Assembly (NCBI GenBank): GCA_002269645.1
Contig: NIVC01000211.1
Span: 372,001-436,000, forward strand
DNA from: Macrostomum lignano
Lineage: Eukaryota
DNA: 64,000 nucleotides
Direction of reading: 5' to 3'
In this document: positions 11,560 to 59,943 of the stretch, in pieces
Layout: each line of letters starts with the position of its first letter
Numbering within the stretch: position 1 is the stretch's first letter
The notes under the pieces: model-generated
What the model was told of the DNA's origin: nothing
What the model saw: the letters and a program-made list of their open reading frames with translations, nothing else
Databases searched by the model: none
Position numbers and translations under genes: made by a program

Positions 11560-11680
11560 TCTAATATATCTAAAGTAGCAACCCCCCCTCCACCGGCCCT
11601 GTCTGTCTGTGGGTATGTAACAGGTTATCTCCCAAAAGGCTCAACCGATTTTACTTATCTTTACTTTACTTTTACTTTTT
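11560..11680 (+). mobile_element. Helitron-like non-autonomous 5' fragment
   Basis: Starts A^TCTAATATATCTAAAG, has a ctgtctgtctgt microsatellite and ...aggctcaaccgatttt, as in non-autonomous Helitron/DINE-like 5' ends. Flanked by 33-bp direct repeats (11528-11560, 11681-11713). Confidence 0.5.
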
Positions 11681-12971
11681 ACTTATCGTCGCTATTTACC
11701 AACATTAACAAATATAAACTAATAGTGTTACTAAAAAGTATAAATAACAGAAAAGATTTTCAAATAGATATTCGTGTATGTAACGAAGTATTATGTTAGA
11801 TTAAATTCTGTATTATTTAGTGAGTTCAGATTTAGTACCGCTAATTTACTTGTTTCTAAGAAAATGACTTTTGCCATTAGGGCCTTTCGAAGTGGCTCTA
11901 GCCTCTTACAGATTTAAAGTGTTCAAATTAGCTGTACCGTACCGAAATGCTAGATAGCGGCACTAAATTTAGCGGGGCCCATCACTAGCAGTGGTGCGTC
12001 GAATGGGCTGGAAAGTGAAACTTGCAACTTTAATTATTTCTAATTTTAGCATCCTTAAAGAAGTAAAATGGTGAACAAAGATTGACAGTGACACTGACCT
12101 GTATATAATCTGTATATTGTATGGGTGAAGACAAATTAGACAATAGTTCCAAAATTATAAAAATGAATGGCACAGCTTGACTTATGCTTAGGCCCTATGG
12201 TTTATGAATATATTTAATATTTGGCAGTGCTTATCCCCACGGTACCGTAGGAATAATTTCTGTCTTATTCCAACGGTACCGTGCGAATAATTTTCTGCTT
12301 ATCCGCACGGCACACTGACGAGATAGCTGCCCTATCTTCTACATATGCCGTGGGAATAATTTTCTGCTTATCCGCACGGCACACTGACGAGATAGCTGCC
12401 CTACACGTCCTCTGTTTTATTCCCTCTGCTTTACTAGCTGCCCTATCGGTTTTTATCTGCTACATATATATGCTGTGCGTGAATAGTTTATAGCTTATTG
12501 AAAGGGAATTTGAACTGAGGATACTAAGAAGCTGTTGATCTTGATGATGTATAAACTCGAATCAGTTCTAGACTAGTATATGCATGTGTAAATGCGTGTT
12601 ATTCTGCTTTACTGATACCCTTCTGTATACTTATTCAACAATAATTCAACAAAGTTGTTATACTGCACTCAAATCGTATGTACTAAACTTCCCACACGGC
12701 ATATGTAGAAGATAGGGCAGCTATCTCGTCAGTGTGCCGTGCGGATAAGCAGAAAATTATTCGCACGGCATATGTAGAAGGGTTTCCAGTTGATTCGTCT
12801 GCCGCCAATTCGTCTGCTCAGCAGACGAACTGGCAAACGAATTCGTCTGCTAGCCAATAAGATTAGAGGAAGAAAAGGAGGGAAAGGGTGATGGAAACCT
12901 GCTTTAATCTTCTTATAATGAATGATTTTCTCGCTGTATATAGTATAGGCTATATGTGTAGTGTAACAGTG

Positions 12972-13490
12972 TTATATAGTACATAAATATTCAGAATATG
13001 TAATACAATATGGTAACTGCACGACTCGTGACTCGATCTCCTGATCTACAGTTAAAAACGAGTACTTATTGTATTTCCTAAATTTACACCCAGCTTTACC
13101 TCCATTTCTTCCCAGAATATAACCACGGGAAGATACAAGCAAATCGCCGCCACGTTCGCTTACGCCCCGCTTTAGTTGAAACTGCTCTGGCTCCACGTGC
13201 ATTACTTGAGCAGGAAGAGCTGCCGGTGGCGCGGCGAAAGCTGCTGGTGGATCGGCAAAAGCTGGCAGATCGGCGAAAGCTGCTGGTGGATCGGCAAAGG
13301 CTGCAGGCAGATCGGCGGGAGCTGCTGGTGGCTCGGCGAAAGCTGCTGGTGGATCGGCAAAGGCTGCAGGCAGATCGGCGGGAGCTGCTGGTGGCTCGGC
13401 GAAAGCTGCTGGTGGATCGGCAAAGGCTGCAGGCAGATCGGCGGGAGCTGCTGGTGGCTCGGCGAAAGCTGCTGGCGGATCGGCTGAACC
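12972..13490 (-). pseudogene. Transposon gene remnant: Pro/Ala-rich 21-aa repeat linker followed by a FLYWCH-like start
   Basis: Minus frame DPPAAFAEPPAAPADLPAAFA (63-bp repeats) continues into QLKRGVSERGGDLLVSSRGY, resembling the S-x-RG-x3-L-V-x2-GY start of FLYWCH domains. Confidence 0.5.
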
Positions 13491-13719
13491 CAGATCAGAA
13501 AACTGGCTTGTGCCAACCTTACCAGTACCATTGAGCGTCTGCGTCTGTGTGTGAAAAATTTGTTATCGCTTTGTTATCACTACGAGATTTACATCAAGCT
13601 TAAACTTTGCAGCATGACCGAAAATATCAACAATTACATGTACCGTAGCATAGCATGTAAACAGTAATTAATATATAATAGAATCCTTTATACTACAGTA
13701 GCTGCTGCCAGTCTCTTAC

Positions 13720-13834
13720 CTCATTTTTTCCAGTGCACTTTGAGCATTGCCAATTAAAGGAATGTTCCATCAAAGCATGGTATTCCTTTCGGCTCAAACC
13801 AGTGCCGCAAAGACGGTGCTGCCATAGCTGACAA
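13720..13834 (-). pseudogene. C-terminal half of a PHD finger (CQLWQHRLCGTGLSRKEYHALMEHSFNWQCSKC)
   Basis: Minus-strand translation ending at a gag|gtaag donor. Joins the + strand half at 14126-14201 through the duplicated 8-mer ttgtcagc. Confidence 0.8.
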
Positions 13835-14125
13835 GGTTTCCAGTTGATTCGTCTGCCGCCAATTCGCTCAGCAGACGAATTGGTTTGCAACGTTTTGCCT
13901 ACTCGTCTGCTGCGGCAACCAATGAAATTAGGCCTGCTCCTATACCACTCAATTCTTCATTACATCGCATCCACCCCAGCTAAAGTTTTTGTATACAGTT
14001 TTAATAAAGCCATCGTTTTGAACATCATTTCAATAAGATGACAGTTAAATATTCAACGTGTTAAAGGATTCATTTTAATAATTATAACAAAAACACATTC
14101 AATATAGTGTGTGCGCTACTGAAAT

Positions 14126-14201
14126 ATGACTGACATGTGCATTGAATGCCAGAAAGAAGTGAGTTATCGGCAGCATGCTTTACAGTGCGATTCTTGTCAG
14201 C
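14126..14201 (+). pseudogene. N-terminal half of a PHD finger (MTDMCIECQKEVSYRQHALQCDSCQ)
   Basis: Plus-strand translation interrupted at 14202 by a transposon terminus gggtgccagtcaattcgtc. The joined peptide has a full C4HC3 ligand set. Confidence 0.8.
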
Positions 14202-16479
14202 GGGTGCCAGTCAATTCGTCTGCTGAGCAGACGAACTGGCGGCAGGGTAAATCTCAAACACAAAAGTAAAAAATTTGACAAAAAATAAAAGTTCTGTGGC
14301 ATGCAAAATAATGCTTTACCTCTGAAGATTAAACAATAATATAATAATTTTTCTTCTTAAAACCACAAGTTGGCCTGAATTTCAAGAAAGAATGCTGTTT
14401 GTTTTTTCGAAGGGTATTCTGACAACGATTAATACCGAAGATTAACAGTTTGTTCATTTAACATATAAAATTGTAGTTTTTGTTTTTTTAGAGTTAAATT
14501 TCTATTGGTTTGTAGTATACACAAAATATTCTTTGTTTTTAAGCAACATTTTGTTATAAATTGAGGCTGTTTATAGTTACTTAATTTAACGTGCTAAGAA
14601 TCTGCCTGATTTAATATAAACGGAATATACGGTACCTAAACCATTTTTTATATATATATCGACAACATATCCCGTTGATGGACTGATAATGAACGGAGTT
14701 TATTATTGATGGCAATGAAACGATGCCAATTGGGTTATTTATTTTTACTAAAATTTAATATGGCGAAACCTACAAATTCTGTAATATTCAGACTGACACC
14801 GATGGATCATGGATCTAGTATTCAACTTGAACATATTTTCAAATATGATAACATTAGAGGAATATATTAAATACATTGGCAAAAACAAATTAGAATATTT
14901 CTATGGATTACCAAACATTAGAGCTCAAAATATACACATAAGATCAAAATTGAATATCATTACAAGCGAATTCATCAAAGATTTTCATACAAAAATAAAC
15001 AAACTGCTTACTTAAGTATGTTAGTTGGCTAAATGGTAAAAACCCATATAATGAACTTAATAAGGTCTATACTTCTTTAGTAAAATCACAAGAACATGCA
15101 ATAAAAAACTACTCTTTGTTTAGTATTTTTCTAAATAATAACAAGTTTTGGGAACATTTACATGCTTATGAGCAGAGTAAACTTACACCTTACAGGAAAT
15201 TTTGTGCTCATAAAAAAGTCAAAATGTAACATCAATAGGCATAAGTAAGTAACAATGCATTGACAGTCGCAGATAAAACAAAATAACAATATTTAAAATG
15301 TCTCTGAAAGAATGAATCACTAAAGATCAAAATGTTTGGCGTTGTTTATCAGAAAACCTACACCTTACAGGAATTTTTCAACAGTAGACAAGTGTCATGC
15401 AATTAAGACAGGGCTAAATAAGTTCATAAATATTGAAAACACAGCCGTAAAATATCCACAAGCTCACAGATAAAGGTTTTCCCCTATATTTTCAGTCATT
15501 GTCCCATAGACAAAAATAGTACACGTACACAAAAGAGCGTTATGAAACAAAAAAACGTACTTAAAGTACAAGTCAGAAAAATACGTTTTCGGCACCCGAG
15601 TGGCATCGATAAAAACCCGGACTAAAGGTACAAAAACGAGTGCATAAGATCGGGTAAATGCCATGTCATATGCCACGGTGACATGTCTTCTACCCAATTA
15701 AAAGCGGGCTTGTGTATAAATCCAATGAACTAATTTCGGCGCATAATTAAAATCGTTATTTTGCTGCTTTTAATATAGATCGATGGATTAGTTCAAACAG
15801 TGGAAAGAAGTTTCATTGATACTGCAATATTACTAGTTGCATTGCAAAGTGTAGAGTATTTAAATCAGAATGAGAACTGTTATCAGGGAACTGTCTATTT
15901 ATAATACCTTTAAACATTTAATAAAAGAAGGCCTAACCATCTATACAGGCCTATTATGTAGGGTATACTGTATATAGATCTTTTTAATTTATAAAGACCT
16001 ATCTTTGTTCATTTATTTTTAATCAATGCTAAGCCTCCACTATAATTATATGTTATTAAAATATATCATTATAAAATAGTTGGGCCCTATACTAGCTAGG
16101 GTTATACTTAGAGCTTGCAAATTTATATCAAATTTATATCCAACATTTTTCTAATCCTGATCTTTTTAGAAATTTAGCTTTTCTTTAGCTTAGTAAGTTA
16201 GTATTTTTAGAATAGATATAATTTTTTAGCCTTTATATATTTTTTTCAATTTAGTTTCTTTTCTAGCTAAATTCCTTATTTGAATTTTTAGTTTAAATTA
16301 ATCTTTAAAAGCTACTTTATCCTTAAGCCTAGCCTTAATTTGTCTAACAATATAGCTTTCCCTTATCTTAATCATAATCCTTTAAAGAATCTAGTAGCTC
16401 TATAACCCTAATCCTTTAAGTAATCTATCCTCTCTCTTATCTTAATCATCTAAGAAATTTAGCCACTTTCCTATCTCAA

Positions 16480-19400
16480 TCCTCTAGGAATTTAGCTGCT
16501 TTCTTATCTAAATCTTCTAGGGCATCTAGCCACTCCCAATTCCCAATCTTCTGGGGAATTCAGCCACCCTCCCTTCTCAATCCTCTAGGGAATCCAGCTG
16601 CTTTCTTATCCAGATCTTCTAAGGAATCCAGGCACTCCCCTTTCCCAATCCTCTGAATAATCTAGCTGCTTTCTTATCCAAATCCTTTAGGGAATCCAGC
16701 CACTTCTCTTTCCCAATCCTCTAGAAAATCCAGCCACTCCATTTTCCCAATCCTCTAGGAAATTTAGCTGCTTTTTTATCCAAATCCTCTAGAGAATCTA
16801 GCCACTCCTCTTTCCTAATCCTCTAGGGAATATAGCCCCTCCTCTTTACAAACCCTCTGCGGAATCTAGCCAATCCCCTTTCCTAATCCTTTGGGGAATC
16901 TAGCCACTCCCCTTCCCAATACTCTAGGGAATTTAGCTGCTTTCTTATCCAAATCCTCTAGGGAATCTAGCCACTCCCCTTTACAAATCTTTTAGGGAAT
17001 CCAGCCACTCCCCATTCCCAATCCTCTGGGGAATCTAGCCACTCCCCTTTCCTAATCCTCTGGGGAATCCAGCCACTCCCCTTTCCTAATCCTCTGGGGA
17101 ATCTAGCCACTCACCTTTCCTAATCCTTTGGGGAATCCAGCCACTCCCCTTTCCTAATCCTCTGGGGAATCCAGCCACTCACCTTTCCTAATCCTCTGGG
17201 GAATCTAGAGACTCCCCTTTCCTAATCCTCTGGGGAATCCAGAGACTCCCCTTTCCTAATCCTCTGGGGAATCCAGCCACTCCCCTTTCCTAATCCTCTG
17301 GGGAATCCAATCCAGCCACTCCCCATTCCCAATCCTCTGGGGAATCCAATCCAGCCACTCCCCTTTCCCAATCCTCTAGAAAATCCAGCCACTCCATTTT
17401 CCCAATCCTCTAGGAAATTTAGCTGCTTTTTTATCCAAATCCTCAAGAGAATCTAGCCACTCCCCTTTACAAATCTTTTAGGGAATCCAGCCACTCCCCT
17501 TTCCTAATCCTCTGGGGAATCCAGCCACTCACCTTTCCTAATCCTCTGGGGAATCCAGCCACTCACCTTTCCTAATCCTCTGGGGAATCCAGCCACTCCC
17601 CTTTCCCAATCCTCTAGGGAATCCAGCCACTCCCCTTTCCCAATCCTCTGGGGAATCAAGCCACGACCCTTTCCCAATCCTCTGGGGAATCAAGCCACGA
17701 CCCTTTCCCAATCCTCTGGGGAATCCAGCCACTCTTTTCCCAATCCTCTGGGGAATCCAGCCACTCCCCTTTCCTAATCCTCTGGGGAATCCAGCCACTC
17801 AACTTTCCTAATCCTCTGGGGAATCCAGAGACTCCCCTTTCCTAATCCTCTGGGGAATCCAGCCACTCCCCTTTCCTAATCCTCTGGGGAATCCAGCCAC
17901 TCCCCTTTCCTAATCCTCTGGGGAATCCAGCCACCCCTTTCCTAATCCTTTAGGGAATCCAGCCACTCCATTTTCCCAATCCTCTAGAAAATCCAGCCAC
18001 TCCATTTTCCCAATCCTCTAGGAAATTTAGCTGCTTTTTTATCCAAATCCTCTAGAGAATCTAGCCACTCCTCTTTCCTAATCCTCTAGGGAATATAGCC
18101 CCTCCTCTTTACAAACCCTCTGCGGAATCTAGCCAATCCCCTTTCCTAATCCTTTGGGGAATCTAGCCACTCCCCTTCCCAATACTCTAGGGAATTTAGC
18201 TGCTTTCTTGTCCAAATCCTCTAGGGAATCTAGCCACTCCCCTTTACAAATCTTTTAGGGAATCCAGCCACTCCCCATTCCCAATCCTCTGGGGAATCCA
18301 GCCACTCCCCTTTCCTAATCCTCTGGGGAATCCAGCCACTCCCCTTTCCTAATCCTTTGGGGAATCCAGCCACTCCCCTTTTCTAATCCTTTGGGGAATC
18401 CAGCCACTCCCCTTTCCTAATCCTCTGGGGAATCCAGCCACTCCCCATTCCCAATCCTCTGGGGAATCCAGCCACTCTTTTCCCAATCCTCTAGGGAATC
18501 CAGCCACTCTCCTTTCCTAATCCTCTGGGGAATCTAGCCACTTCTCTTTCCCAATCCTCTGGGGAATTTAGCTGCTTTCTTATCCAAATCCTCTAGGGAA
18601 TCCAGCCACTCCCCTTTCCCAATCCTCTGGGGAATCCAGCCACTCCCCTTTCCCAATCCTCTAGGGAATCCAGCCACTCTCCTTTCCTAATCCTCTGGGG
18701 AATCTAGCCACTTCTCTTTCCCAATCCTCTGGGGAATTTAGCTGCTTTCTTATCCAAATCCTCTAGGGAATCCAGCCACTCCCCTTTACAAATCCTCTGG
18801 GGAATCCAGCCACGCCCCTTTCCTAATCCTCTGGGGAATCCAGCCACTCCCCTTTCCTAATCCTCTGGGGAATCCAGCCACTCCCCTTTCCTAATCCTTT
18901 GGGGAATCCAGCCACTCCCCTTTTCTAATCCTTTGGGGAATCCAGCCACTCCCCTTTCCTAATCCTCTGGGGAATCCAGCCACTCCCCATTCCCAATCCT
19001 CTGGGGAATCCAGCCACTCTTTTCCCAATCCTCTGGGGAATCCAGCCACTCCCCTTTCCTAATCCTCTGGGGAATCCAGCCACTCCCCATTCCTAATCCT
19101 CTGGGGAATCCAGCCACTCCCCTTTCCTAATCCTCTGGGGAATCTAGCCACTCCCCTTTCCTAATCCTCTGGGGAATCCAGCCACTCCCCTTTCCCAATC
19201 CTCTGGGGAATCCAGCCACTCCCCTTTCCCAATCCTCTAGGGAATCCAGCCACTCTCCTTTCCTAATCCTCTGGGGAATCTAGCCACTTCTCTTTCCCAA
19301 TCCTCTGGGGAATTTAGCTGCTTTCTTATCCAAATCCTCTAGGGAATCCAGCCACTCCCCTTTCCCAATCCTCTGGGGAATCCAGCCACTCCCCTTTCCC

Positions 19401-19700
19401 AATCCTCTAGGGAATCCAGCCACTCTCCTTTCCTAATCCTCTGGGGAATCTAGCCACTTCTCTTTCCCAATCCTCTGGGGAATTTAGCTGCTTTCTTATC
19501 CAAATCCTCTAGGGAATCCAGCCACTCCCCTTTACAAATCCTCTGGGGAATCCAGCCACGCCCCTTTCCTAATCCTCTGGGGAATCCAGCCACTCCCCTT
19601 TCCTAATCCTCTGGGGAATCCAGCCACTTTCCTTTCCCAATCCTCTGGTGAGTCTAGCCACTCTTCTTTCCCAATTGTCTTAGGAATCCAGCCTGCAATA
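16480..19700 (+). repeat. 34-bp minisatellite array in left TIR (ggggaatccagccactcccctttcctaatcctct)
   Basis: Tandem array, increasingly C>T/G>A-degenerate toward 16480; inverted counterpart at 31090-33560. Confidence 0.95.
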
Positions 19701-19836
19701 TTATTCGTCGTTGGATCCAGCTTTTCCAGCATTTCTGCTTTGCTATCAACAGTTGTATTTAGCTGATAGTTTTTTCTTGCTAATTTGATTTAATTTATCT
19801 ACGCTGGTAAACTATCATATAATTTATTTTGCTTTC

Positions 19837-22800
19837 ATGGGCCGCTCAAAGAAGTATCTGAAGGTGCGAATCAACGGGCGCACAAGGCAGCTGTCTGGTG
19901 TAGGGAAAACGAGTGTCCTAAAACGAAGTCTCACAACCGCTCACGTGCTAGAAAGTAGTGGTGCAAGTGTCCCGGATGATTGTGAGACTGTTGTAAATTC
20001 TCATGTAGATGGCCCCAGTACTAGCGGAGTGCATTGTGACTGGGAAGATGTGAGTCCTAAAAACAGGCCTGAGATCCTTTCGGCCTTCTTGAAAGCTGTA
20101 GAGGTAGGAGTTTGTGCCCAATGTTTGAAAGTTGGCTCTGCATACTGTCCACAGTGTTCAGCATTTTTCTGTGATGAATGTGTCCGAACTCGTCATATTG
20201 GCCTTGTACATTCCGCGTACCAGGTAAATAATTAATTATCTTCAATTCATTCAAAAATATTCTATTCAATTCATTAATCCTCTACGATTGAGTGAGCACA
20301 TTTTTAAGAGACATAAAATTTCAGAATCGAGAGCCTCTTGACCTAAGTATCAAGTTTGCGTGTGGCTGCACGCCTGGCTCATCATTAAAAGTGACGCTTT
20401 TGGACGCTTTTGGAGGAAAGTTATTTTTACCTTCTATTGTGGCACGAACTAAAATAACTAATTAATCAAATCTTGTATCCTGCAAAGTTTGCTTTTGGAA
20501 ATCTACTAACCTTAATTGTTCTACTTAATGTACCTCTCCTTGTAGGTTACCATTCGGCCATTATCGATGCTTGTGCTAGTTGTCATTGTACTGAATTTCT
20601 CGTTGCTCGTAACTATTTTCCTTTGTCCGACCGTACTTCAGTCTTCGCATCTTTCGAACTGTTGAACAGTTTAGATTCCATCATGATACACGGAATTACA
20701 TCATTATCGAAGGCTTGTACCATCCTTCAGAACAGAAGAATCGTTTTTGGCCAGCGACCGAACGTAATTTCTTTAGTCTAACTTTTTAATGAGCGGAATC
20801 AATTTTAAATTAGACTTTTAGATTATCAATTCACGATGAACCATTAGGTCAATTCTACCATTCCTCCCTCGAATGGCAAATGTATTACTACAATCCAGTG
20901 GAGTGAGACAGTGCAGTAAAAATAATTGAAGCCCAACATACTCGTAAACCTTTTATTTTTACTCTAAGGGCTCTTAGAGTAAAATGTTTAGAGTAAGATG
21001 TTTCAAAAATGTTTTTATTAATTTACTGCAGCGGGATCTGTACTATGACCTTCGACGAAACAACACCCTCGGCCTGTATCGAGAATTTTTAGCTGAAGTC
21101 GCACAATTTCCTTCTGTGTGCACTTTATGCCGATCGAAAGATTTGGTGAGACAAAGATGAATGCTTTGTGATGAAATTTTTAATGTGAAGAGCTTTTCAT
21201 TTATCAGAAATATTACTGTCTTTGACTTAGGGACCCATCCTGCACGGCGACGCCCTAATGGGGTGGAGGCGTCGAGCTGCTGTAGGAGCGGAGATTTTCC
21301 AGGACCCTCTGGACGCAGATCTGCCGTTTCCGTTTGCGCGTGTTGATCTGTCTGGACAAGCCATTGCACCTGCACGCGGCGCTTGCCCGAACTGGACTGC
21401 AGGAGAAACATCTTACATTTGTCGTGCATCCTCAAAGCTGGACGTCAAAGGCTTTTTTATTGTTGCCTGTCGCCATGGGTTTATCTGGTCGTGCTCTGAT
21501 GTGCGCACTCCTGGAGAGCGGTGTGTTTATATGTGTTTTTTTTATTTATTGTGCCTTCACGGTAAGAAATGACTAACAGAATATTTTTGGCTCTTTTTAC
21601 TGATGCAAATCAGCTTCTTTTTTTCTACATTTAGTCTCATCTACCCTACAACTCTACTGCGAGCAGCAGTGCAACGTCTTGGCGTCCAGGAGGAGTCCGT
21701 GACGTTTGTGTATGATGTCGCGTGTAAAATTGGAAGCAAAGTGAAATCAAAGCTTGCTGTGCCGGTTTTTCACGCTTATGGCCACGAGTCTAAATGCCGT
21801 GTAAGTTCAGCTAGAAGTGTTTCTTGGTTATTTAAAATAATCATCTCACGGGTTCACTCATGCTAGGTGATGCTAGGTGATAGTAGGTTAATGCGTATTG
21901 CGTACAGTATTTATATTTCGCAATAAATCCATAAAACTCAAGTAGTTGTTAAACGTATGGTCGTATTTCTATAATGTAATGAGTAATAATTACTTAATAA
22001 TTTCCTTCCAATTTAGCTGAACAACTCAATCCGCGTTACCTCTGGAACTGGCATCACCGACGGCGAGATCTGCGAACGCATTTTTTCGTTTTTACGTCCC
22101 TACGGGCGCATATTAAAAGAGATGCGGATCGACCGGCGCACCAGACTCATCGCACATATCATTGGGATGTATCATCTGCGTTTGGATTTCGGTTAGCTAG
22201 CCAATAACAATTTTTTGTCTGCCGCTTTACAAAAGTGACGTGTCAATGTCTAGCTGTCCAATTTTTTATTTCATTCTGACGAGTATGTTAATTTTTCCAC
22301 AGAGTCGTGGCTGGTATCGAGAGATAAGCTTCTTTCAAAGAAAAAGTATCTGATTGATCAGAAAGTTCGTGAAGTTCGACAGCTCGTACCACAAGCAGGT
22401 TAGTTGATGCATATGCAGCGTTTGGATGTTACCGTTTATCTCTTCGCGTACTCATTTCATAAATGAAACGAGTATAAACTCAAATTTCGTATGCGTAGAT
22501 GCTGAAATTACTACTAATTACCAAAATTTTAGACTTCACCTACCAGCAGTTGCTGCAATTAGGTGAACAATGGCTTCGCGAAGATGCACATGCGGCTACT
22601 CAGCGAACCAGCGATTGGCTTCAAAAGATGCGCCGGCTTGCAGTCGAGAAGCGGCAGGCCTTGAACGCACTTAATAGATGCATTGGTAAATCACATCGCG
22701 TAATATATACGAGTACTTATAAATTCAGTGTCAAAACCTTTTTTGCCATCTTATCATCTATCCAAATCAGTATCATTAATTTGCGTAAATGCTAAATTTT

Positions 22801-23165
22801 ACCCACCAGGTTCGCACCAGAGTCGTCTGCTGACGCGCAAAGTTGATGTACTACGCACAGAAATGAAGAAAGTGCTCGAATCCAGCGGAAGCCAGTATAC
22901 ATTGAAGGAGCTGGAAAACGCTTCGTCGGCGATATACTCCCGTCTTGATAACCACACCATCCGGCCTTTTCCTCTCGCTGTGCAGCTTGCGGCTATTGAA
23001 ATTTTCACCACTTCTATTCGCTCAACAGAAGAAGTCCAGCGGGTCAATGCGGAACGAGATTCTCTAGCTCGATTTAACTCATTTAGGTTGCCCATTACAG
23101 AGGTCTGCAGCAACAAAAGTTCCGACTGCTCGGGCTCATCTTCATCGGAGGACGAACTTGATTGA
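19837..23165 (+). pseudogene. Spliced KDZ-family transposase with N-terminal Cys/His zinc clusters (B-box-like, CxC-like); apparent lesions
   Basis: Exons approx. 19837-20223, 20325-20415, 20546-20763, 20814-20902, 21032-21145, 21231-21520, 21635-21800, 22017-~22166, ~22302-22388, ~22531-22686, 22810-23165. Motifs ILHGDALMG (D), LDVKGFFIVACRHG...GER, FVYDVAC (D), PVFHAYGHESKC, GTGITDGEICERIFS (E), KEM..R match KDZ transposases. Apparent frameshifts near 21085 and 22040 and a GA donor at 20416. Confidence 0.85.
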
Positions 23166-24348
23166 TAACTAAAGTGCATCAGCAACTTTGGTACATTTTG
23201 ATAACTTTTCAACCATGCTTATTTGTAAAAAAAAGTCGTATTCAATTGTTTGTTCAATTACTGAACTACAATATTGCTTAACTTTTTGCTGAGTGTTGCG
23301 ATTTATATTGTATTTGTGGGGTCTAGTAACTTAACTAAGTTATGCTAAGATGCCCCAGGAAAAGTAAGGATAGTTCTGATTGCATTAATTGGGGTCAGGG
23401 TCGGTCGGGTTTTGGTACCGGGTTCGGGGTTTAAAAACATTTTCGTACAAAAAATAAGTATGCATAGTAATGACTGTCCCAGTCTCTCACCACACATCAG
23501 CTGAGCATTTTTTCACCATCTGCCCCGCATTTATGCGAGCCATCTTAGCATTACTTACGAGCTACACTTGGCCTATGTACACAAATGATATCAGTTTCTG
23601 CCATCATTATGACTTATTTCCGCTTCCTACAATGTAATGTGCTACTCATTTTAAGTGACAAAGCAGAGAAAGCCTCATGCATCATTTCAATGCCTGTAAT
23701 TTATTTTTGTATATTTTTACTTGTTCTTGTTCTCCTTTTGTATAGTTTTTACTTTCAAGATGAGATCAGACCACACATCTGTTCTTGTAATATTTAACGA
23801 TCCGCACAAGCAAGCGTGACATAAAGAGCAAGTAAGTTTTTCTTTGTGTCAATTTAAACAAAAAAATACTAATATCTATATGCATGTTTAATTAAATTAC
23901 ATTAAGCAACGAATTTCTGCTGTTTTACTAGGAGTATAAATACGAATTACTTTATCAAGAGAAATTTTTCAAGTTTCGCCTTCGCGTAGTGCACGGTTTT
24001 TTGCATCTTATTTGCAAACTTTTGAGAAAGAAAGGGTCTGTCAATTTAAGCTCATAAAGTGGAGCCCGAGTAACATGTAACATGTCGATCGAGTACTGAT
24101 CAAGCGACATTGAAACAGTCCGCTCCTTTTTGCCAATATGATCAAGGACCTTAATCGCACCCTTATCGGCTGTACGTGTAAATTTTCATACGGCTGAATG
24201 CAGATAATGTTACATGACTTACTTGCAATACATGTAGGAGCGTACATGCAGTGTACATGTAAGTCTGCAGGCTACGCACCCACGCTGACAGCATTTTGTC
24301 AATCGATATGGACACTCAGCAAATGAAGTTAGAACCCCCCCCCCGAAC

Positions 24349-25728
24349 AATAAGTTTCCGGATGTGCCCAGACAGAAATAGTTAGAGAAAAAAACAGTTA
24401 CATCTTTTCAAAGTACTCTTCAGCAGATTCGATGCAAATTTTCATGCGCCTAAATCACTTGCTGAAGCAGCTGGACCAATCTGAAGCAGGCACCTTCTCC
24501 ACATGCAGGGTGAAGGCCTCCAGTCCACGCAGCTTTGGTGATCCATAGCGGATTCCACGCATGGCCTGCACTTGATTTGTGGAAGCACAAAGAAGTCGCA
24601 GGGGGCCAGGTCGGGGCTGTAGGGTGGATGACCGAGCTCTTGAATGCGCTCTCCGGCTAGGAACTCCGCCACCTGTCGAGCCTTGTGGGCCGGGGCGTTG
24701 TTGAGATGGAGAAGGATGCCCCGAGCTCGAGTCCTTGGGCGACGCCTGGAGAGAGCGCTCAGCACTTCTGGCAGGCAAACGTTGGCGTACCAGTCACTGG
24801 TAACTGTGCGCTGCTGCACGAGTGGAACCGCGTGGCCAGATGACCGGTTTTCGCCACAAAAACGGCCACCATCTGCTTCGCCACGCTGCGCGATCTCGAC
24901 GAGCTTGGATGGTGGGGTGCCGCTAACTGGAGTCCGCTGGGCCGACTGCTGCTTAGTCTCCGGGTTGAAACTATAGATCCAGGACTCGTCACCACTGACG
25001 ATATCCCAGACCAAGTTTGAGCTGCCTCCGTTGAATCTGTCGAGCATGGTGCGGCACCAGGTCACCCGAGCCTCCTGCTCCGGAGCCAGCTGATGAGGCA
25101 CCCAGCGTGCAGAAATCTTGCTCAGGTTGAGCTGTGAATATAGGATCGTCCTGATGAATCCTGATGAGATGCCCACCTCTGTCTCTATCTGGGCCACAGT
25201 CACTCGGGCATCATTCTCAACCATGGCCCGGACAGCAGCAACATTATCCTCGGTCGTTGCGGAGACAGGCTGTCCTCGGTCGTTGCGGAGACAGGCTGTC
25301 CTCGGTCGTTGCGGAGACAGGCTGTCCTCGGTCGTTGCGGAGACAGGCTGGCCGCTGCGCTCCTCATCATCCAGACTCTGCCTGCCACGTCGAAATTCGG
25401 CAAACTAGTCAAAAACGGTGGATCTAGAAGGTGCTTCATCCCCAAAAATCCTCGCAATCGCTCAAGACTTTCTTGCTGCCGCAAACCACTTTTAAAATCG
25501 TAATAAATCATTGCTCTAAAATGACTCCTATTGAGCTCCATTGTGAATTCGATAGATAAGGGTGGGTATTCTAGCTTGGTTTGGGTGCTGCACTGGCTAT
25601 ATATGACCAGTTTGTCTGAAACTTTACAAACATTGTACTTTATAAATGTACTTGACACCTATATGGTGTCAGATTTTGTCAGCCGCCTCTCAACTATGCA
25701 CATCCGGAAACTTATTACTCAGCCCTCG
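24349..25728 (-). mobile_element. Mariner (DD34D) element with decayed transposase, inserted in the KDZ element
   Basis: MELNRSHFRAMIYYDFKSG start, ARWVPH, SGDESW, LHLNNAPAH (D>N) and YSPDLAPCDF. 5' TIR tacgagggctgagtaataagtttccggatgtg; partial 3' TIR aataagtttccggatgtg at 24349. Internal 26-bp tandem duplication near 25240-25345 and frameshifts. Confidence 0.9.
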
Positions 25729-26269
25729 TACGTACAAAATCATCAATCTAAACTCAATTTCATCGTCACCGGGCTCCTGGTTGATAGAGAGGGTTCGCTA
25801 TCCAGCATTGTGCAGCTCCATGACCAACAGTCGCTCTGATGCAATGAGGTGTATGCCTCCTCGACAGTCCGGTAAGGCTCTAACCCTGACCCCTTACCCT
25901 ATTCTTTTTCGAGTTTGTGATGGCCCCCTTTCGCGTCGGTCTATTTGAAAATATTGCGATACAGAGGATAGTTTAGGTTGTAGGCTAGACAAACCTACAA
26001 TTGAAGATTTTAAAACCATTGAGTCCTATTTGCCTATGGCCGGTCGGCGAGTCCTACCAAGCTTTCTCTAATGTCGCAGGTACTGTATACAAGTAAATGA
26101 ATAACACGGTTGAACACAATTCCAGATACTCGTAGATCTAGATTGAGTGATAATCCTATTCTGATAGAACGGCTGATAATGATAGTAGGCTTTAACCCGT
26201 GTATTCGCGATTAACTTGAAATTTACACAGGTTTGATATAGCATTTTGCACTCTGTTTGAGATAAGAAG

Positions 26270-26460
26270 ATGCACAGTTTGGTCATTGAAGCTTTGGACA
26301 GAGGTGAGCGGCCGGTCGATCGCGAAATGGACCAAGATTAACGTCAAGACAGTTATACCAATTAAACGTCGGTATGAAGTGTATGAAGAGGACACTTACG
26401 GCCTGACAGTTCAGCGAGTCCCTGGCCGCTCCTGACTAAACCGCGCTTGCTGACAAACTC
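26270..26460 (+). pseudogene. Degenerate Tc1-like transposase N-terminal HTH remnant
   Basis: With one frameshift reads HSLVIEALDRGERPVD-AKWTKINVKTVIPIKRRYE...VQRVPGRS, similar in pattern to Tc1/Tc3 paired-like HTH; no catalytic region seen. Confidence 0.4.
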
Positions 26461-26822
26461 TGAACGAGGTCGCCGCGAATGTTACGGCGGCAAGACTACT
26501 GCGGTCGGGCAACGGAAAAAGAAATGAACCGGGGCTCGAACTCGATAAGCGCCTCAAAGCGCGACAGGTGACAAAGCGACCGGGGGATGAACAAGGGGCC
26601 GCGGAAAGGAGAGAAGTGAGACAGATCCGATTTTTGCCAAAAACAGTTTCCTAGACATTTATGACCAAGGAAACCATGCAGTAGTATTACATTAAATACA
26701 TAATAATGCCGCTCCCCGCGCGTGATGCCAGTTGCGTTACTTGCAATTCCGATCAGAGAAAAATTGAGATCACTAGCTAAAGGTGGAATATACTTTTCAA
26801 TTCTCAGCAGTGTGTATATATA

Positions 26823-27060
26823 CTCAGCAACAGCTAAACCCCCCCCCCCAACTCACGCTGTCACACGGCCCAAAAGTTTTGTATGCCATCGGTGATTCAG
26901 AAATGTGTGAAGGCTGCCGCCGCCAGACGCGAGCGCAAAATGCGGCATGGGGGATTTGGGGAGGGGGTGGCGCAACTCAACCCAGTGGTGGGAATTAAAG
27001 ACTGCTTAACTTTTGTGCCCGTGTGACAGCGTGAGTTGGGGGGGGTTAGCTGTTGCTGAG
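26823..27060. mobile_element. 238-bp MITE with ~55-bp TIRs and TA TSD (Tc1/mariner-type)
   Basis: ctcagcaacagctaa(c)n aactcacgctgtcacacgg at 26823 and its inverse ending 27060, each flanked by TA. Confidence 0.85.
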
Positions 27061-28394
27061 TATATGTAATAGTGCTCCGGATTTTCAACCGCAGGGGCAG
27101 AATGGGCATAATTTCTCGCTACGGATTTTTTCCCTGGAGGTAACGATGCGCGGCAAAACAGCCATAGCCTAAGAGGGCATGGCACCGCCCTAATGTCTCT
27201 ACTGTTGAGTCGAAGTAGGGCCCTGCGGAGGGCGGAAGGACAGGGGACAGCCGGGCGGGATTACTGGCCGTCGGGGTGTTACTTAAAGTACACAAGGAAG
27301 CTTCAAAATCTTCAGTGCTCATAGTGCATCATCAGCCACGCTAAACTTTATACAGATAATAAAGGCCTAGGATTTCGCCTATTGTTGCTTTTTCAAATGT
27401 TGGGCCTGTTGCGTGGGGGGTTGGGCGTGTGCTTTTACTCCGCGTATCGTTTGTGATTTTATTCCTGTGCGTGCGCTCTTTGTCTGGGCTCACGCTCTTT
27501 GCACGTCTCTGCTCTATCGTGACTTTAATGTACACTGTTGGTGTTTTAGCCCTTGGGTTGAGGGGCTGCTATGGAACCTCGCTTATAATAAATCGTATCG
27601 TATGTCAGTGCACTTGGCACTTTCGTCTCGCCTCGCAAACTTTTGGCTCTCGATTTGCACTGACTAACATCTACGATAACTGATATTTCAAATAACTGAA
27701 AGTAAAAGTATCAATACCTCACATTTAACGAATCACCAACAAGCTGGAAAATGTCTAGATGTTGCTCATTCTTCGTCTTCAAAGATTTGGACGCAACTAT
27801 AACAAATATTTATTTACGACGCTTTTAAAATGCTGCCGATTCTTAAGGCGCCAAAGAGCACACGTAAATATATTTTAAAAGCAAAGTACAGGAAAAAACC
27901 TGCATTATAATTGAACACTGTAGCTCATGAGAACGAATTTGAATCGAGCATTACGAGCTACATGAAAGTATAAGAAAGGGTGCTTATTTTGAGGCGTATG
28001 CCGTTGAATTAAAAATGGATGGTGAAAATGGATGGTAAAAATGGTAAAAAGACCTTGATTTTTTCACTGTAAAATTTCAAAGCAGTGAATAAATAAGCTA
28101 GCAATTTAAACTGGGACACCTCTGATCTTTTGAAAATAAGCGCATCCGTTGACAGAAATTGATTTTGCTTCTAATATATATTTTTTGCCATAGGCTTGCT
28201 AGCAATATATTATTTAATCAAATCCTGCTCCTTTTCGAATGGTTACGCAGAGATAAATTTAATTCAATTATTTTGATATTTCACAAGTGGTTTAATACGA
28301 GCTACTCGTACGAATTCAAAGCACTTAATTTTTTCAGATTCTTTTGCAACCATAAAACAAATTACATCTCGGAAACTTCTCGCTTCTCTCCTGG

Positions 28395-30961
28395 TCACTT
28401 TAAAATTTTAATAAGAACTTGAGATTGTGATGTACTACCGACTTTGATGTTTGCAGAATGACCAGCCGCACCGGCTGGCCGAGGACCGGTATATGTAATT
28501 CGAAAGGCTGGACGATGACCGACGGCGCTGCCCGGCAGAGTAGCAATGTCACCGGCAGGACGATGACCGACGGCGCTGCCCGGCAGAGTAGCAATGCCAC
28601 CGGCAGGACGATGACCGACGGCGCTGCCTGGCAGAGTAGCAATGTCACCGGCAGGACGATGACCGACGGCGCTGCCCGGCAGAGTAGCAATGCCACCGGC
28701 AGGACGATGACCGACGGCGCTGCCCGGCAGAGTAGCAATGCCACCGGCAGGACGATGACTGACGGCGCTGCCCGGCAGAGTAGCAATGCCACCGGCAGGA
28801 CGATGACCGACGGCGCTGCCCGGCAGAGTAGCAATGTCACCGGCAGGACGATGACCGACGGCGCTGCCCGGCAGAGTAGCAATGCCACCGGCAGGACGAT
28901 GACCGACGGCGCTGCCCGGCAGAGTAGCAATGCCACCGGCAGGACGATGACCGACGGCGCTGCCCGGCAGAGTAGCAATGTCACCGGCAGGACGATGACC
29001 GACGGCGCTGCCCGGCAGAGTAGCAATGCCACCGGCAGGACGATGACCGACGGCGCTGCCCGGCAGAGTAGCAATGTCACCGGCAGGACGATGACCGACG
29101 GCGCTGCCCGGCAGAGTAGCAATGTCACCGGCAGGACGATGACCGACGGCGCTGCCCGGCAGAGTAGCAATGTCACCGGCAGGACGATGACCGACGGCGC
29201 TGCCCGGCAGAGTAGCAATGCCACCGGCAGGACGATGACCGACGGCGCTGCCCGGCAGAGTAGCAATGTCACCGGCAGGACGATGACCGACGGCGCTGCC
29301 CGGCAGAGTAGCAATGCCACCGGCAGGACGATGACCGACAGCATCATCAACATTCTCTACGGGTGTATCGGAGACGGCATTATCCTCGAGATGACCGAGG
29401 TCAGCAGCACTGGCTCGATGGGGAATAAACTTTAATTTATCCCGCGAATCATACAACTCCCGCAGCTCCGTGTAATTCATTAGTGCAGGGCGTTTAATAC
29501 TCGGAAAAAAACTGCCGCCGAGGTTGTTGAAGTTCAACTTGGCGCCCATTCCGGCTTGAGCTGTGAAAAAAGTAAGTAAACAGATACATAAGTATAAATA
29601 TATATAAATTTGAAAAAATGGATTACTTTTTAAAGCAGCCTACAGGTGGGGGGGGGGGCGTAGCCCAGCGGTAGCGCAGCTGCTCTGGTGTGCCAGCGAC
29701 CCAGGCTCGATTCCAAGTGCAGTCACATTAATTTGGTGCTGAATTGGAATCAAGGCTTGGCTCTGCTCGTGCAATTAACGACCTTGAGAGCCAACCCCCC
29801 AAGTCGCAGTGAAGTGTACATGCCTAACGATAATATAAAGTTAGGGCCGCTGTACACTCCTGTGTGAGTGTGTGCCTGCGTATGTATCCGCGCGCTTGTA
29901 TGCCTGCTCAGGGGAGTCGGCGGAATGGGCAGCAATGCCTCTCGCCGGTTGTGTGCCTCTGTCGCTTAAAGTGCGCCAGGGTGCACGCAACCCCCCTGCC
30001 TTTGATAAAAAAATAAAAAAGCAACCTACAGACCTAAATGTGAGATTTTCTCTTTCCCTTTAGACTTAAATTATCTAAAATTTAGCACAAGTGGGTCTGA
30101 AAAATACTATGAAAAAAATACATAATTAATTCACCATATGCCATGCGAACAGATGCGCGAACTTCTTTACGCATATGCTCAACCGTCGGTTTTTGAGCCG
30201 ACGACTGTGCTAGTCCGGTGGAAAGTAATTCAAATTTCTGCAATGGTAGAGAACAAATACCATTACATTACATTAGTCATTACATCTATTAAGCTTTAAG
30301 GCCTTTTATCTCAAAATTGCAATTGTATGTAATTGCATCAAAACAATTGCATGACAAGAAACATTAGCTTACTTGAAGAACTCCAATATTGTCATTTAAA
30401 ATTCCTGCGACTTCAGGAGAAGCACAAGTGCGAATATTGGAGCCGCTGCGACTCTTCGTGATAATAATGATATGATAGTCGGCAAACATTAGACGTGCCT
30501 GCAAGTGATTAAGCGAATTTATTCATTTACGCTCAGGCGGTACTACCACACAGTCTGTCAGTCTGGACAAGTACAAAATTTAAAATTAAACTTTGGTGCA
30601 CAGTATGCAATTCAATGTAGTTACCAAATCCTCCAATGTATGCACCGAGGGAGTTTGCTGAACTTTTTCTCGTGCAGCACGTTCGTACACAGATTTTTCT
30701 TCAGCAGTTAGACTTTTAAATTTGTCGCTTAAAAAAGCCATGCGTTCCTTGGAAAAGTTATCTGAAAAAATTATCCGAAATAATTGTAGATCATTACTCC
30801 ATTTAAAACAAAAAAGTATAACTTACGAAAAAGAAACAAACACTGAAGTTCAAAGCAAAAAAGCCAAACAAAATCTTACTTGTTCCCATTGTCTTCAAAA
30901 ACATGGACCAGGCACTGGTCTTTCTTGGGCGCGAACGAAAACTTCGGCACTTTTTTTTCAT
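28395..30961 (-). CDS. HMG-box protein with a long 16-aa-repeat C-terminal region (5 exons: 30961-30880, 30761-30625, 30498-30373, 30237-30135, 29560-28395; ~537 aa)
   Basis: All four introns GT-AG with matching phases 1,0,0,1 and no stops. Spliced N-terminus MKKKCRSFRSRPRKTSAWSMFLKTMGTNNFSKERMAFLSDKFKSLTAEEKSVYERAARE follows the HMG-box pattern (PRKPxSAYxLF...L..EEK..YE..A). Confidence 0.8.
28510..29340. repeat. 48-bp tandem repeat (~17 units) encoding AVGHRPAG(G/D)IATLPGS within the HMG gene
   Basis: Unit gacgatgaccgacggcgctgcccggcagagtagcaatg(c/t)caccggcag; in frame with the last HMG exon. Confidence 0.95.
29657..30020 (+). mobile_element. tRNA-derived SINE, family 2, copy B (in intron 4 of the HMG gene)
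   Basis: Head ggcgtagcccagcggtagcg...ccaggctcgattcc (A/B boxes), body shared with 6050-6347, A-rich tail near 30005-30020. Confidence 0.8.
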
Positions 30962-31089
30962 GCTTAAAAATAGCAGAAAATTGAATTGAAGACAAATAAA
31001 CCATACAATTATTATAAAACATGATTTCCTTAAATGAATAAAAAGGAAAGTGGAAATATAAAAGGATGGAGATAAGGAATATAATTGTT

Positions 31090-33560
31090 AGACGTTTGAT
31101 TCTCCCAAAGGATTACGATAGGAGAGTGGCTGAATTCCCTGGAGGAATGGGATGGGAGAGAGGCTTGATTCCTCAAAGGATTGGGAAAGGGGACTGACTG
31201 GATTCCCTAGAGGATTGGGAAAGGGGAGTGGCTGGATTCCCCAGAGGATTGGGAAAGAGAAGTGGCTGGATTCCCCAGAGGATTAGGAAAGGGGAGTGGC
31301 TGGATTCCCCAGAGGATTAGGAAAGGGGAGTGGCTGGATTCCCCAAAGGATTAGGAAAGGAGAGTGGCTGGATTCCCCAGAGGATTGGAAAAGGGGAGCG
31401 GCTGGATTCCCTAGAGGATTGGGTAAAGAGTGGCTGGATTCCCCAGAGGATTGGGAATGGGGAGTGGCTGGATTCCCTAGAGGATTGGGAAAGAGAAGTG
31501 GCTGGATTCCCCAGAGGATTGGGTAAAGAGTGGCTGAATTCCCTGGAGGAATGGGATGGGAGAGAGGCTTGATTCCTCAAAGGATTGGGAAAGGGGAGTG
31601 GCTGGATTCCCCAGAGGATTGGGAAAGAGAAGTGGCTGGATTCCCCAGAGGATTGGGAAAGGGGAGTGGCTGGATTCCCCAGAGGATTAGGAAAGGGGCG
31701 TGGCTGGATTCCCCAGAGGATTTGTAAAGGGGAGTGGCTAGATTCCCTAGAGGATTTGGAAAGGGGAGTGGCTGGATTCCCCAGAGGATTGGGAATGGGG
31801 AGTGGCTGGATTCCCCAGAGGATTTGGATAAGAAAGCAGATAAATTCCCCAGAGGATTGGGAAAGAGAAGTGGCTGGATTCCCCAGAGGATTAGGAGAGG
31901 GGAGTGGCTGGATTCCCCAGAGGATTAGGAGAGGGGAGTGGCTGGATTCCCCAGAGGATTTGGATAAGAAAGCAGCTAAATTCCCCCGAGGATTGGGAAA
32001 GAGAAGTGGGTGGATTCCTTAGAAGATTTGTAAAGGGGAGTGGCTAGATTCCCTAGAGGATTTGGAAAGGGGAGTGGCTGGATTCCCCAGAGGATTGGGA
32101 ATGGGGAGTGGCTGGATTCCCTAAAAGATTTGTAAAGGGGAGTGGCTAGATTCCCTAGAGGATTTGGATAAGAAAGCAGCTAAATTCCCCAGAGGATTGG
32201 GAAAGAGAAGTGGGTGGATTCCCCAGAGGATTAGGAAAGGGGAGTGGCTGGATTCCCCAGAGGATTGGGAAAGGGGAGTGGCTGGATTCCCCAGAGGATT
32301 GGGAAAGGGGAGTGGCTAGATTCCCCAGAGGATTGGGAAAGGGGAGTGGCTGGATTCCCCAGAGGATTAGGAAAGGTGAGTGGCTGGATTCCCCAGAGGA
32401 TTAGGAAAGGTGAGTGGCTGGATTCCCCAGAGGATTAGGAAAGGGGAGTGGCTGGATTCCCTAAAAGATTTGTAAAGGGGAGTGGCTAGATTCTCTTGAG
32501 GATTTGGATAAAAAAGCAGCTAAATTTCCTAGAGGATTGGGAAAATGGAGTGGCTAGATTCCCCAAAGGATTAGGAAAGGTGAGTGGCTGGATTCCCCAG
32601 AGGATTAGGAAAGGTGAGTGGCTGGATTCCCCAGAGGATTAGGAAAGGGGAGTGGCTGGATTCCCTAAAAGATTTGTAAAGGGGAGTGGCTAGATTCTCT
32701 AGAGGATTTGGATAAAAAAGCAGCTAAATTTCCTAGAGGATTGGGAAAATGGAGTGGCTGGATTTTCTAGAGGATTGGGAAAGGGGAGTGGCTGGATTGG
32801 ATTCCCCAGAGGATTGGGAATGGGGAGTGGCTGGATTGGATTCCCCAAAGGATTAGGAAAGGGGAGTGGCTGGATTCCCCAGAGGATTAGGAAAGGGGAG
32901 TGGCTGGATTCCCCAAAGGATTAGGAAAGGTGAGTGGCTAGATTCCCCAGAGGATTAGGAAAGGGGAGTGGCTGGATTCCCCAGAGGATTAGGAAAGGGG
33001 AGTGGCTAGATTCCCCAGAGGATTGGGAATGGGGAGTGGCTGGATTCCCTAAAAGATTTGTAAAGGGGAGTGGCTAGATTCCCTAGAGGATTTGGATAAG
33101 AAAGCAGCTAAATTCCCTAGAGTATTGGGAAGGGGAGTGGCTAGATTCCCCAAAGGATTAGGAAAGGGGATTGGCTAGATTCCGCAGAGGGTTTGTAAAG
33201 AGGAGGGGCTATATTCCCTAGAGGATTAGGAAAGAGGAGTGGCTAGATTCTCTAGAGGATTTGGATAAAAAAGCAGCTAAATTTCCTAGAGGATTGGGAA
33301 AATGGAGTGGCTGGATTTTCTAGAGGATTGGGAAAGAGAAGTGGCTGGATTCCCTAAAGGATTTGGATAAGAAAGCAGCTAGATTATTCAGAGGATTGGG
33401 AAAGGGGAGTGCCTGGATTCCTTAGAAGATCTGGATAAGAAAGCAGCTGGATTCCCTAGAGGATTGAGAAGGGAGGGTGGCTGAATTCCCCAGAAGATTG
33501 GGAATTGGGAGTGGCTAGATGCCCTAGAAGATTTAGATAAGAAAGCAGCTAAATTCCTAG
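31090..33560 (-). repeat. 34-bp minisatellite array in right TIR (inverted relative to 16480-19700)
   Basis: agaggattaggaaaggggagtggctggattcccc units. Distinctive variants (e.g. ggctggattggattcc) appear mirrored in both arms. Confidence 0.95.
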
Positions 33561-34655
33561 AGGATTGAGATAGGAAAGTGGCTAAATTTCTTAGATGATT
33601 AAGATAAGAGAGAGGATAGATTACTTAAAGGATTAGGGTTATAGAGCTACTAGATTCTTTAAAGGATTATGATTAAGATAAGGGAAAGCTATATTGTTAG
33701 ACAAATTAAGGCTAGGCTTAAGGATAAAGTAGCTTTTAAAGATTAATTTAAACTAAAAATTCAAATAAGGAATTTAGCTAGAAAAGAAACTAAATTGAAA
33801 AAAATATATAAAGGCTAAAAAATTATATCTATTCTAAAAATACTAACTTACTAAGCTAAAGAAAAGCTAAATTTCTAAAAAGATCAGGATTAGAAAAATG
33901 TTGGATATAAATTTGATATAAATTTGCAAGCTCTAAGTATAACCCTAGCTAGTATAGGGCCCAACTATTTTATAATGATATATTTTAATAACATATAATT
34001 ATAGTGGAGGCTTAGCATTGATTAAAAATAAATGAACAAAGATAGGTCTTTATAAATTAAAAAGATCTATATACAGTATACCCTACATAATAGGCCTGTA
34101 TAGATGGTTAGGCCTTCTTTTATTAAATGTTTAAAGGTATTATAAATAGACAGTTCCCTGATAACAGTTCTCATTCTGATTTAAATACTCTACACTTTGC
34201 AATGCAACTAGTAATATTGCAGTATCAATGAAACTTCTTTCCACTGTTTGAACTAATCCATCGATCTATATTAAAAGCAGCAAAATAACGATTTTAATTA
34301 TGCGCCGAAATTAGTTCATTGGATTTATACACAAGCCCGCTTTTAATTGGGTAGAAGACATGTCACCGTGGCATATGACATGGCATTTACCCGATCTTAT
34401 GCACTCGTTTTTGTACCTTTAGTCCGGGTTTTTATCGATGCCACTCGGGTGGTTTTCGGTCGCTATCGCCACGATAAAAGCATAAGCTCTGGCTAAAAGT
34501 TTAAAGACACATTTTTCAATCAGTTTTTTATAAATAAAAGTTCAATTTATGTACAAATACTTCTGGTTTAACAATTAAATTCATGCTGAAAGAAAAAATT
34601 TGTTTATAACTTACGTATATTTCAATTTGAGATTTACCCGGCAGACGAATTGACT

Positions 34656-59885: not shown

Positions 59886-59943
<58 letters not shown>

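Follow-up and report, generated by a model that had tools for sequence, protein, structure and literature searches.

A two-gene KDZ transposon of Macrostomum lignano carries a conserved accessory gene predicted to encode an HMG-like protein

A stretch of 64,000 nucleotides from the genome of Macrostomum lignano (GenBank assembly GCA_002269645.1, contig NIVC01000211.1, positions 372,001 to 436,000 of the forward strand), referred to here as the window, contains a complete KDZ transposon. Coordinates are window positions unless another locus is named. Locus L002 of this contig corresponds to window positions 40964-18395 at 100% identity. The element extends from 15593 to 34451 (18,859 bp) and includes a transposase gene on the forward strand and, on the reverse strand, an accessory gene that predicts a protein with an HMG-like N-terminus. 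A perfect 8-bp target site duplication (TSD), GTTTTCGG, is found on both sides, at 15585-15592 and at 34452-34459, and this length is typical of Zisupton/Dileera-type KDZ elements (PMC12730594). The terminal inverted repeats (TIRs) are 3.4-4.1 kb long and are made largely of tandem arrays. The left TIR (15593-19693, forward) consists of an 18-bp terminus, CACCCGAGTGGCATCGAT, at 15593-15610, a unique part, and an array of about 94 units of 34 bp (16511-19693). The right TIR (31098-34451, reverse) begins with an array of about 72 units of 34 bp (31098-33533), followed by degenerate units, the unique part and the terminus at 34434-34451; both arrays were delimited with Tandem Repeats Finder (TRF). 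The outer 1613 nt of the TIR are 100% complementary to 32839-34451, and within the window the terminus motif is found at the two element ends only. A promoter common to both genes was not seen in the inner TIR, where there is no similarity past the last array unit.

The transposase gene (19837-23165, forward) is composed of ten exons (19837-20223, 20325-20419, 20580-20763, 21032-21145, 21231-21520, 21635-21800, 22017-22191, 22303-22398, 22533-22685 and 22810-23165). All junctions are GT-AG, and joining them gives an uninterrupted open reading frame (ORF) of 671 aa in which the exon 2/3 junction is the least certain. The predicted protein matches the Pfam KDZ family PF18758 (E=1.6e-29, 103.6 bits against a threshold of 26.6), and this domain, the TIRs and the 8-bp TSD together identify the element as a KDZ transposon. 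Candidate catalytic motifs HGDA..., VYDVAC and TDGEICE were recognised by reading. The N-terminus includes a B-box-like zinc finger that is below threshold (zf-B_box, E=3e-3 to 3e-4) and visible Cys-rich motifs (ACGC, NCHC and CTLC), and no CxC Pfam model matched it. From the ATG at 20683, the 476 aa are 100% identical over their full length to GenBank BOX15_Mlig007828, which is annotated on the window contig and on a second contig. The upstream exons are conserved, by tblastx, in a diverged element described below. A preliminary description of this locus, made from the sequence alone, had set an intact accessory gene against a transposase with lesions. Each apparent stop or frameshift sits in a GT-AG intron, and the supposed contrast disappears as both genes are intact.

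The accessory gene (28395-30961, reverse) is composed of five exons (30961-30880, 30761-30625, 30498-30373, 30237-30135 and 29560-28395). Its four introns are all GT..AG, with phases 1,0,0,1, and the uninterrupted ORF predicts a protein of 537 aa. The ATG at 30961 lies 137 bp inside the inner edge (31098) of the right 34-bp TIR array, and the stop at 28395 faces the transposase stop at 23165, such that the two genes are tail-to-tail and 5.2 kb apart. Over its first 224 aa the protein is 100% identical to GenBank BOX15_Mlig008059g1, which is annotated at this locus, and BOX15_Mlig008059g2. Both have the same splicing as the five-exon model and differ from it in the number of C-terminal repeats. 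The only sources of the GenBank annotation are genome-guided RNA-seq and transcriptome assembly (Wudarski et al. 2017, PMC5730564), and hence the junctions and the transcription of the accessory gene have indirect RNA support. The exon structure, the tail-to-tail arrangement, the start just inside the right array and the intact ORF had all been proposed earlier and are confirmed, the exon structure exactly. The ORF is intact, splicing follows the proposed model, and the gene is transcribed, on RNA support that comes indirectly via the GenBank annotation.

The last exon includes a tandem repeat of 48 bp (28506-29339, reverse; 17.4 units, 97% identical; TRF) that encodes a 16-aa unit, GHRPAG(G/D)IATLPGSAV. 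In the GenBank proteins exactly 14 of the 17 units are missing, which leaves 3-4 units and a length of 313 aa against 537 aa counted from the Met; collapse of short reads is the probable reason. At 28395-29549, long ORFs of 384, 317 and 325 aa overlap, with both strands represented, because the length of the coding repeat is a multiple of three, and the frame used is the only one entered by splicing from exon 4. Intron 4 carries a noncoding GC-rich insert (29640-29990) with tRNA-like motifs (..GGCTCGATTCC..) and a G10 run. It looks like a short interspersed nuclear element (SINE), but ARAGORN calls no tRNA in it.

A second copy of the element was found on contig NIVC01000038.1 (loci L001 and L005). 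It is colinear with the window element, is 99.7-99.8% identical to it and carries the accessory gene. The identity sets in precisely at the termini, the flanking DNA shows no relation to the window, and the copy has an 8-bp TSD of its own, GGTGGCGC at one end and the complement at the other. A truncation or rearrangement of its KDZ gene lies beside a 787-N gap with a 4-kb duplicated overlap and is most likely an assembly artefact. In the window, the spacer between the two genes contains a nested mariner/DDE_3-like transposon remnant (24442-25658, reverse; boundaries approximate), recognised by its ORFs and a Pfam DDE_3 match just below the cut-off (E=1.4e-5). The remnant is common to both near-identical copies, indicating that the 18.9-kb element transposed after acquiring it. 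The window KDZ element has two genes, is structurally complete and transcribed, and moved very recently. With both genes intact and transcribed and the copies so nearly identical, it appears to be currently active, and it looks autonomous.

Three further features were seen in the flanks of the second copy. Its insertion site (L005 4897-4913) includes 12 bases, GCCACTCGGGTG, that are identical to a KDZ right terminus; the last 4 of these are within the 8-bp TSD and are followed by GCGC and then by the element terminus. An old excision footprint or an insertion preference beside element ends could account for this arrangement. Similarity of about 80-85% to the unique TIR part extends over positions 1-270 of L005. 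The nearest host gene outside the element, which is acyl-CoA thioesterase-like (Pfam Bile_Hydr_Trans/BAAT_C) and was listed for L001 (35738-38936), is taken to belong to the flank of the second copy and not to the window.

A diverged family is represented on contig NIVC01004148.1 (locus L003), where the KDZ protein, BOX15_Mlig010793g2, is 65% identical to the window transposase. This element spans approximately 6887-22950 and has the same 18-bp terminus as the window element and a TSD of AATAATCG. Perfect 8-bp TSDs are thus seen at three independent insertions (GTTTTCGG, GGTGGCGC and AATAATCG). Its TIRs, of about 2 kb, are formed from a 9/45-bp array that is unrelated to the 34-bp unit of the window. 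A homologue of the accessory gene is present on the minus strand, convergent with the transposase gene, with its start about 570 bp inward of the right array. It predicts a protein of 378 aa from exons at 20112-20043, 19858-19725, 19200-19069, 18952-18841 and 18642-17954 of L003. The intron positions and the phases 1,0,0,1 are the same as in the window gene, and the two are 47% identical over 195 codons. In a tblastx comparison of the two elements, only the transposase exons and the accessory gene exons were detected.

The presence of the homologue at the same place in a diverged family means that the gene is older than the family split and has since kept both its reading frame and its location. 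The proposal that the gene belongs to the element is upheld by its presence in the independently inserted second copy and, with the same position, orientation and phases, in the diverged family. The ratio of nonsynonymous (dN) to synonymous (dS) substitution, suggested earlier as a check, could be used only in part. The near-identical copies have too few differences, and the maximum likelihood estimates between families (dN 0.60, dS 1.9, omega about 0.3, or more closely 0.32) are indicative only as dS is saturated; the NG86 method fails on this pair. Accession numbering alone suggests a third pairing of an accessory gene with a KDZ gene, as UniProt entries from an older assembly lie five steps apart (HMG-like A0A1I8J7S5 and KDZ A0A1I8J7T0; KDZ A0A1I8G5M5 and HMG-like A0A1I8G5N0).

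These findings bear on the possibility that the accessory gene was recently captured from the host or is a passenger without function for the element. Two near-identical copies alone could not exclude capture, and the databases know the family from one species. However, a 47% identical homologue with identical phases occupies the same place in a family with a 65% identical transposase and unrelated TIR arrays, and any capture must predate the family split, with the ORF open since. In addition, all family members that can be placed are element-linked, the window and L003 genes directly and a paralogue, P0003, by UniProt accession adjacency. The preliminary description had named absence from other copies as the mark of a captured host gene, and the gene is present both in the second copy and in L003. 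Capture or passenger status is accordingly very improbable, and from sequence comparison the accessory gene is taken to be an ancestral, constrained part of the flatworm KDZ lineage and not a recent capture.

Relatives were sought with a HMMER profile search that covered 1.84 billion representative proteins. It returned four M. lignano clusters and one generic metagenomic multi-HMG protein; no relative outside M. lignano was found, and no stand-alone host paralogue was visible. The suggestion that the gene is conserved across kingdoms is not borne out at the sequence level, as no fungal or other relative was returned. The accessory protein and the HMG proteins reportedly associated with fungal KDZ elements may be analogous, or their link may be too remote to detect. 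No paper linking HMG proteins with KDZ or Zisupton elements in animals was found among those searched. Several public models of the accessory gene are mis-built or misnamed (A0A1I8FSU7, A0A1I8J264 and A0A1I8FWF9, or P0005, P0010 and P0004 here). Two mis-built models are among the M. lignano entries returned by the profile search. In UniProt A0A1I8FSU7, named 'MADS-box domain-containing', faulty splicing leaves out most of the HMG-like exons. The other, a 'protein kinase domain' entry of 2138 aa, joins sequence resembling the reverse transcriptase of a long interspersed nuclear element (LINE) to the HMG-like gene and to the antisense strand of the KDZ 3′ end in one chimera. These two entries and several partial models can now be re-annotated as faulty models of the transposon gene.

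The preliminary description assigned an HMG box to the N-terminus of the accessory protein. The Pfam hidden Markov model (HMM) search called for at that stage formally fails. The window protein scores 13.1-14.5 bits with HMG_box (PF00505; E=0.05-0.13), for which the gathering score is 25.4, and 13.1-15.4 bits with HMG_box_2 (PF09011), for which it is 22.4. Neither P0003 nor the L003 homologue has a Pfam HMG match, and a PDB sequence search with the accessory protein gave no HMG match. UniProt names two family members 'HMG box domain-containing'.

Support for the assignment comes from predicted structure and from profile comparison. An AlphaFold2 model of residues 1-73 (predicted local distance difference test score, pLDDT, 74.7) has helices at 17-25, 32-43 and 47-62, and when it was compared with the PDB using Foldseek all 43 matches were HMG boxes (TFAM, HMGB1, SOX, LEF1, UBF and others). 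These have TM-scores of 0.5-0.56, root-mean-square deviations of 2.2-3 Å over 50-59 columns, and probabilities of up to 0.82. The domain is predicted to have the L-shaped three-helix HMG-type fold of about 70 residues. Alignment with eight canonical HMG boxes using hhalign gave a probability of 70-73% (E about 3e-5). A two-member HMMER profile matches a metagenome (ENA) protein that has 4-5 bona fide HMG boxes (Pfam E=1e-49), with E=1.4e-5 summed over 4 repeats and across profile positions 12-63. Scored against an HMM of the canonical boxes, all three N-termini individually exceed at least 1999 of 2000 shuffled sequences of matched composition (p at most 1e-3).

Other aspects of the same evidence weigh against the assignment. 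All Pfam HMG scores fall short of threshold, and for two of the three proteins of the family there is no Pfam match of this kind at all. The individual Foldseek E-values are 1.3-10 and none is significant, the hhalign match spans only helices 2 and 3 (29-32 columns), and the alignment of eight canonical boxes used for hhalign and for the HMM was compiled by hand. An AlphaFold2 model of the 224-aa non-repeat protein is of low confidence (pLDDT 45), which makes a Foldseek search with it meaningless. On balance, a highly divergent HMG box at the N-terminus (about 65 residues, with the box at approximately aa 12-63) is supported, though more weakly than the gene model, and stands as a predicted domain. 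The proposed box retains the three-helix L-shape, with an RK-SAWS...F strand and helix 1, a shortened helix 1 and loop, and an LT-EEK-Y--A helix 3. Compared with canonical boxes, helix 1 and its loop lack about 7 residues, and helix 2 has Phe or Tyr in place of the Trp.

A rival reading is that of a different domain, either another three-helix DNA-binding domain at the N-terminus (Myb/SANT/MADF-like, as in a Harbinger-type partner) or a degenerate MADS-box in the central region. MADF_DNA_bdg is matched as weakly as the HMG models (E=0.07-0.2), as are T5orf172 and others, all below threshold. For the MADS-box there is the UniProt name of P0005 and a central β-hairpin-like stretch that resembles the SRF/MEF2 strands by eye. 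However, none of the 43 Foldseek matches is a Myb, SANT or homeodomain structure, hhalign of the central region with five MADS domains gave a probability of 1.1%, and Pfam SRF-TF is not matched even at E<=10. A non-HMG identity is thus improbable, if less so than recent capture.

The best-conserved part of the accessory protein is not the N-terminus but residues 74-196 (approximately), the central and C-proximal region. A run of 30 consecutive residues, KPTVEHMRKEVRASVRMAYAQAGMGAKLNF, is identical in a paralogue with 64% overall identity, and the conserved central block reads ADYHI-I-K-R-G---TCASPEV...KPTVEHMRKEVRA--R-AY-AGMGAK-N. Every member of the family ends in a lineage-specific tandem repeat, which is the 16-aa unit present 17 times in the window protein, a 12-aa unit in P0003, and PNPPTV, also 17 times, in L003.

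The accessory gene is probably a built-in helper of the element. Its linkage to the element and its conservation would fit a role in transposition, and as the second gene of a recently active two-gene KDZ element it has about an even chance of encoding an HMG-like architectural or DNA-binding cofactor of transposition. In such a scheme, the HMG-like domain would bind and bend the DNA of the kilobase-long TIRs, the conserved central block might mediate self-association or contact with the transposase, and the C-terminal tandem repeats could form a disordered multivalent tail. Possible parallels are the host protein HMGB1, which acts in the synapsis of RAG and Sleeping Beauty, and the DNA-binding partners that PIF/Harbinger (Myb-like) and En/Spm (TnpA) encode. 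A narrower form, in which a dedicated element-encoded architectural protein made up of a divergent HMG box, a novel conserved domain and a fast-evolving repeat tail co-evolves with array-type TIRs, is required to synapse them and replaces the function of host HMGB1, is doubtful. Both families that carry the accessory gene have kilobase-long tandem-array TIRs, though this is a correlation only, with n=2.

Other points tell against a cofactor of transposition. Conservation marks the gene as important for the element but does not give it a part in transposition. The array units of the two families are unrelated, and a protein that binds them would have had to co-evolve with them. The central region, to which a contact function would fall, has no recognisable relative in Pfam and PDB searches.

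The main rival to a cofactor role is that the gene is conserved cargo that helps the element outside the chemistry of transposition, for example as a transcription or chromatin factor that drives its germline or neoblast expression or acts against host silencing. Conservation with the transposase across diverged families would be expected here too, as it shows only element-level selection. HMG-box proteins are commonly chromatin or transcription factors. Cargo of this kind would be analogous to the TET/JBP genes found in fungal KDZ elements and in other transposons, for which a role against methylation-based silencing is proposed (PMC12730594). The accessory gene is also its own transcription unit, convergent with the transposase gene. 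However, nothing ties it to silencing, it has no host-gene relatives in the profile search, and the fixed TIR-adjacent position and the long-array TIRs of both families fit a cis-acting role at least equally well. A cargo function is on this evidence rather unlikely, while clearly more credible than a non-HMG domain or a recent capture, and a cofactor of transposition remains the preferred reading.

Tandem arrays crowd the entire window (36 TRF rows). Outside the element, two long purine-rich and pyrimidine-rich arrays of 15-17-bp units, at 56630-57752 and 58388-60081, have opposite strand polarity and lie about 600 bp apart. Their GC skew is +0.71 and then -0.87, and they resemble another array-type inverted repeat. 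Similar arrays are present in the flank of the second copy (L001 1320-1900).

Few eukaryotic cut-and-paste transposons are as large or as poorly understood as KDZ elements, whose accessory genes are usually dismissed as cargo. The flatworm gene has kept its position and intron phases while the transposase fell to 65% identity and the TIR arrays were replaced, which makes it an unusually clean case. Transgenesis is established in M. lignano, so that the role of a second KDZ gene is directly testable there, and the window element could become a native transgenesis vector.

Fungal KDZ elements are reportedly found with genes for a divergent HMG domain and for TET/JBP, according to work by Iyer and colleagues from 2014. 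The likeness to those elements extends to a KDZ transposase of PF18758, TIRs, an 8-bp TSD, a large size and an element-borne HMG-like gene. The M. lignano element differs in having an animal host and no TET/JBP gene, and in its TIRs of 3.4-4.1 kb that are mostly tandem arrays. Its accessory protein has no detectable fungal sequence relative, and has an extra central domain and C-terminal repeats.

PIF/Harbinger, with a Myb-like protein, and En/Spm-CACTA, with TnpA that binds subterminal repeats, are two-component transposons. The M. lignano element shares with them a transposase accompanied by a second protein, which is transcribed separately and has a small helical domain for DNA binding, predicted in this case, and repeated subterminal motifs. 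Both the transposase superfamily and the DNA-binding fold are different, and the role of the M. lignano protein is inferred. Harbinger and Nuwa are mentioned in PMC12730594.

KDZ elements elsewhere are often giant and include extra transcribed ORFs and nested transposable elements that are fixed among copies (PMC12477816, PMC11343200). The Cryptococcus KDZ1-3 and KDZx1 elements and the giant KDZ elements of Ectocarpus and Chlamydomonas resemble the M. lignano element in a size of 10-30 kb, 8-bp TSDs, extra ORFs of unknown function and shared nested transposable elements (PMC11343200, PMC12477816). Reports on those elements describe extra ORFs that differ from family to family or lack predicted domains, and transposases that are often pseudogenised (PMC11343200, PMC12477816), whereas in M. 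lignano one accessory gene is kept across diverged families and the transposase is intact.

HMGB1 assists the synapsis of Sleeping Beauty and of RAG (PMC7827188, PMC5224488, PMC6941560), and is likewise an HMG-box protein proposed to bend DNA and to promote formation of a paired-end complex. However, HMGB1 is supplied by the host and has two canonical boxes plus an acidic tail, whereas the M. lignano protein is predicted to have one highly divergent box and is encoded by the element itself.

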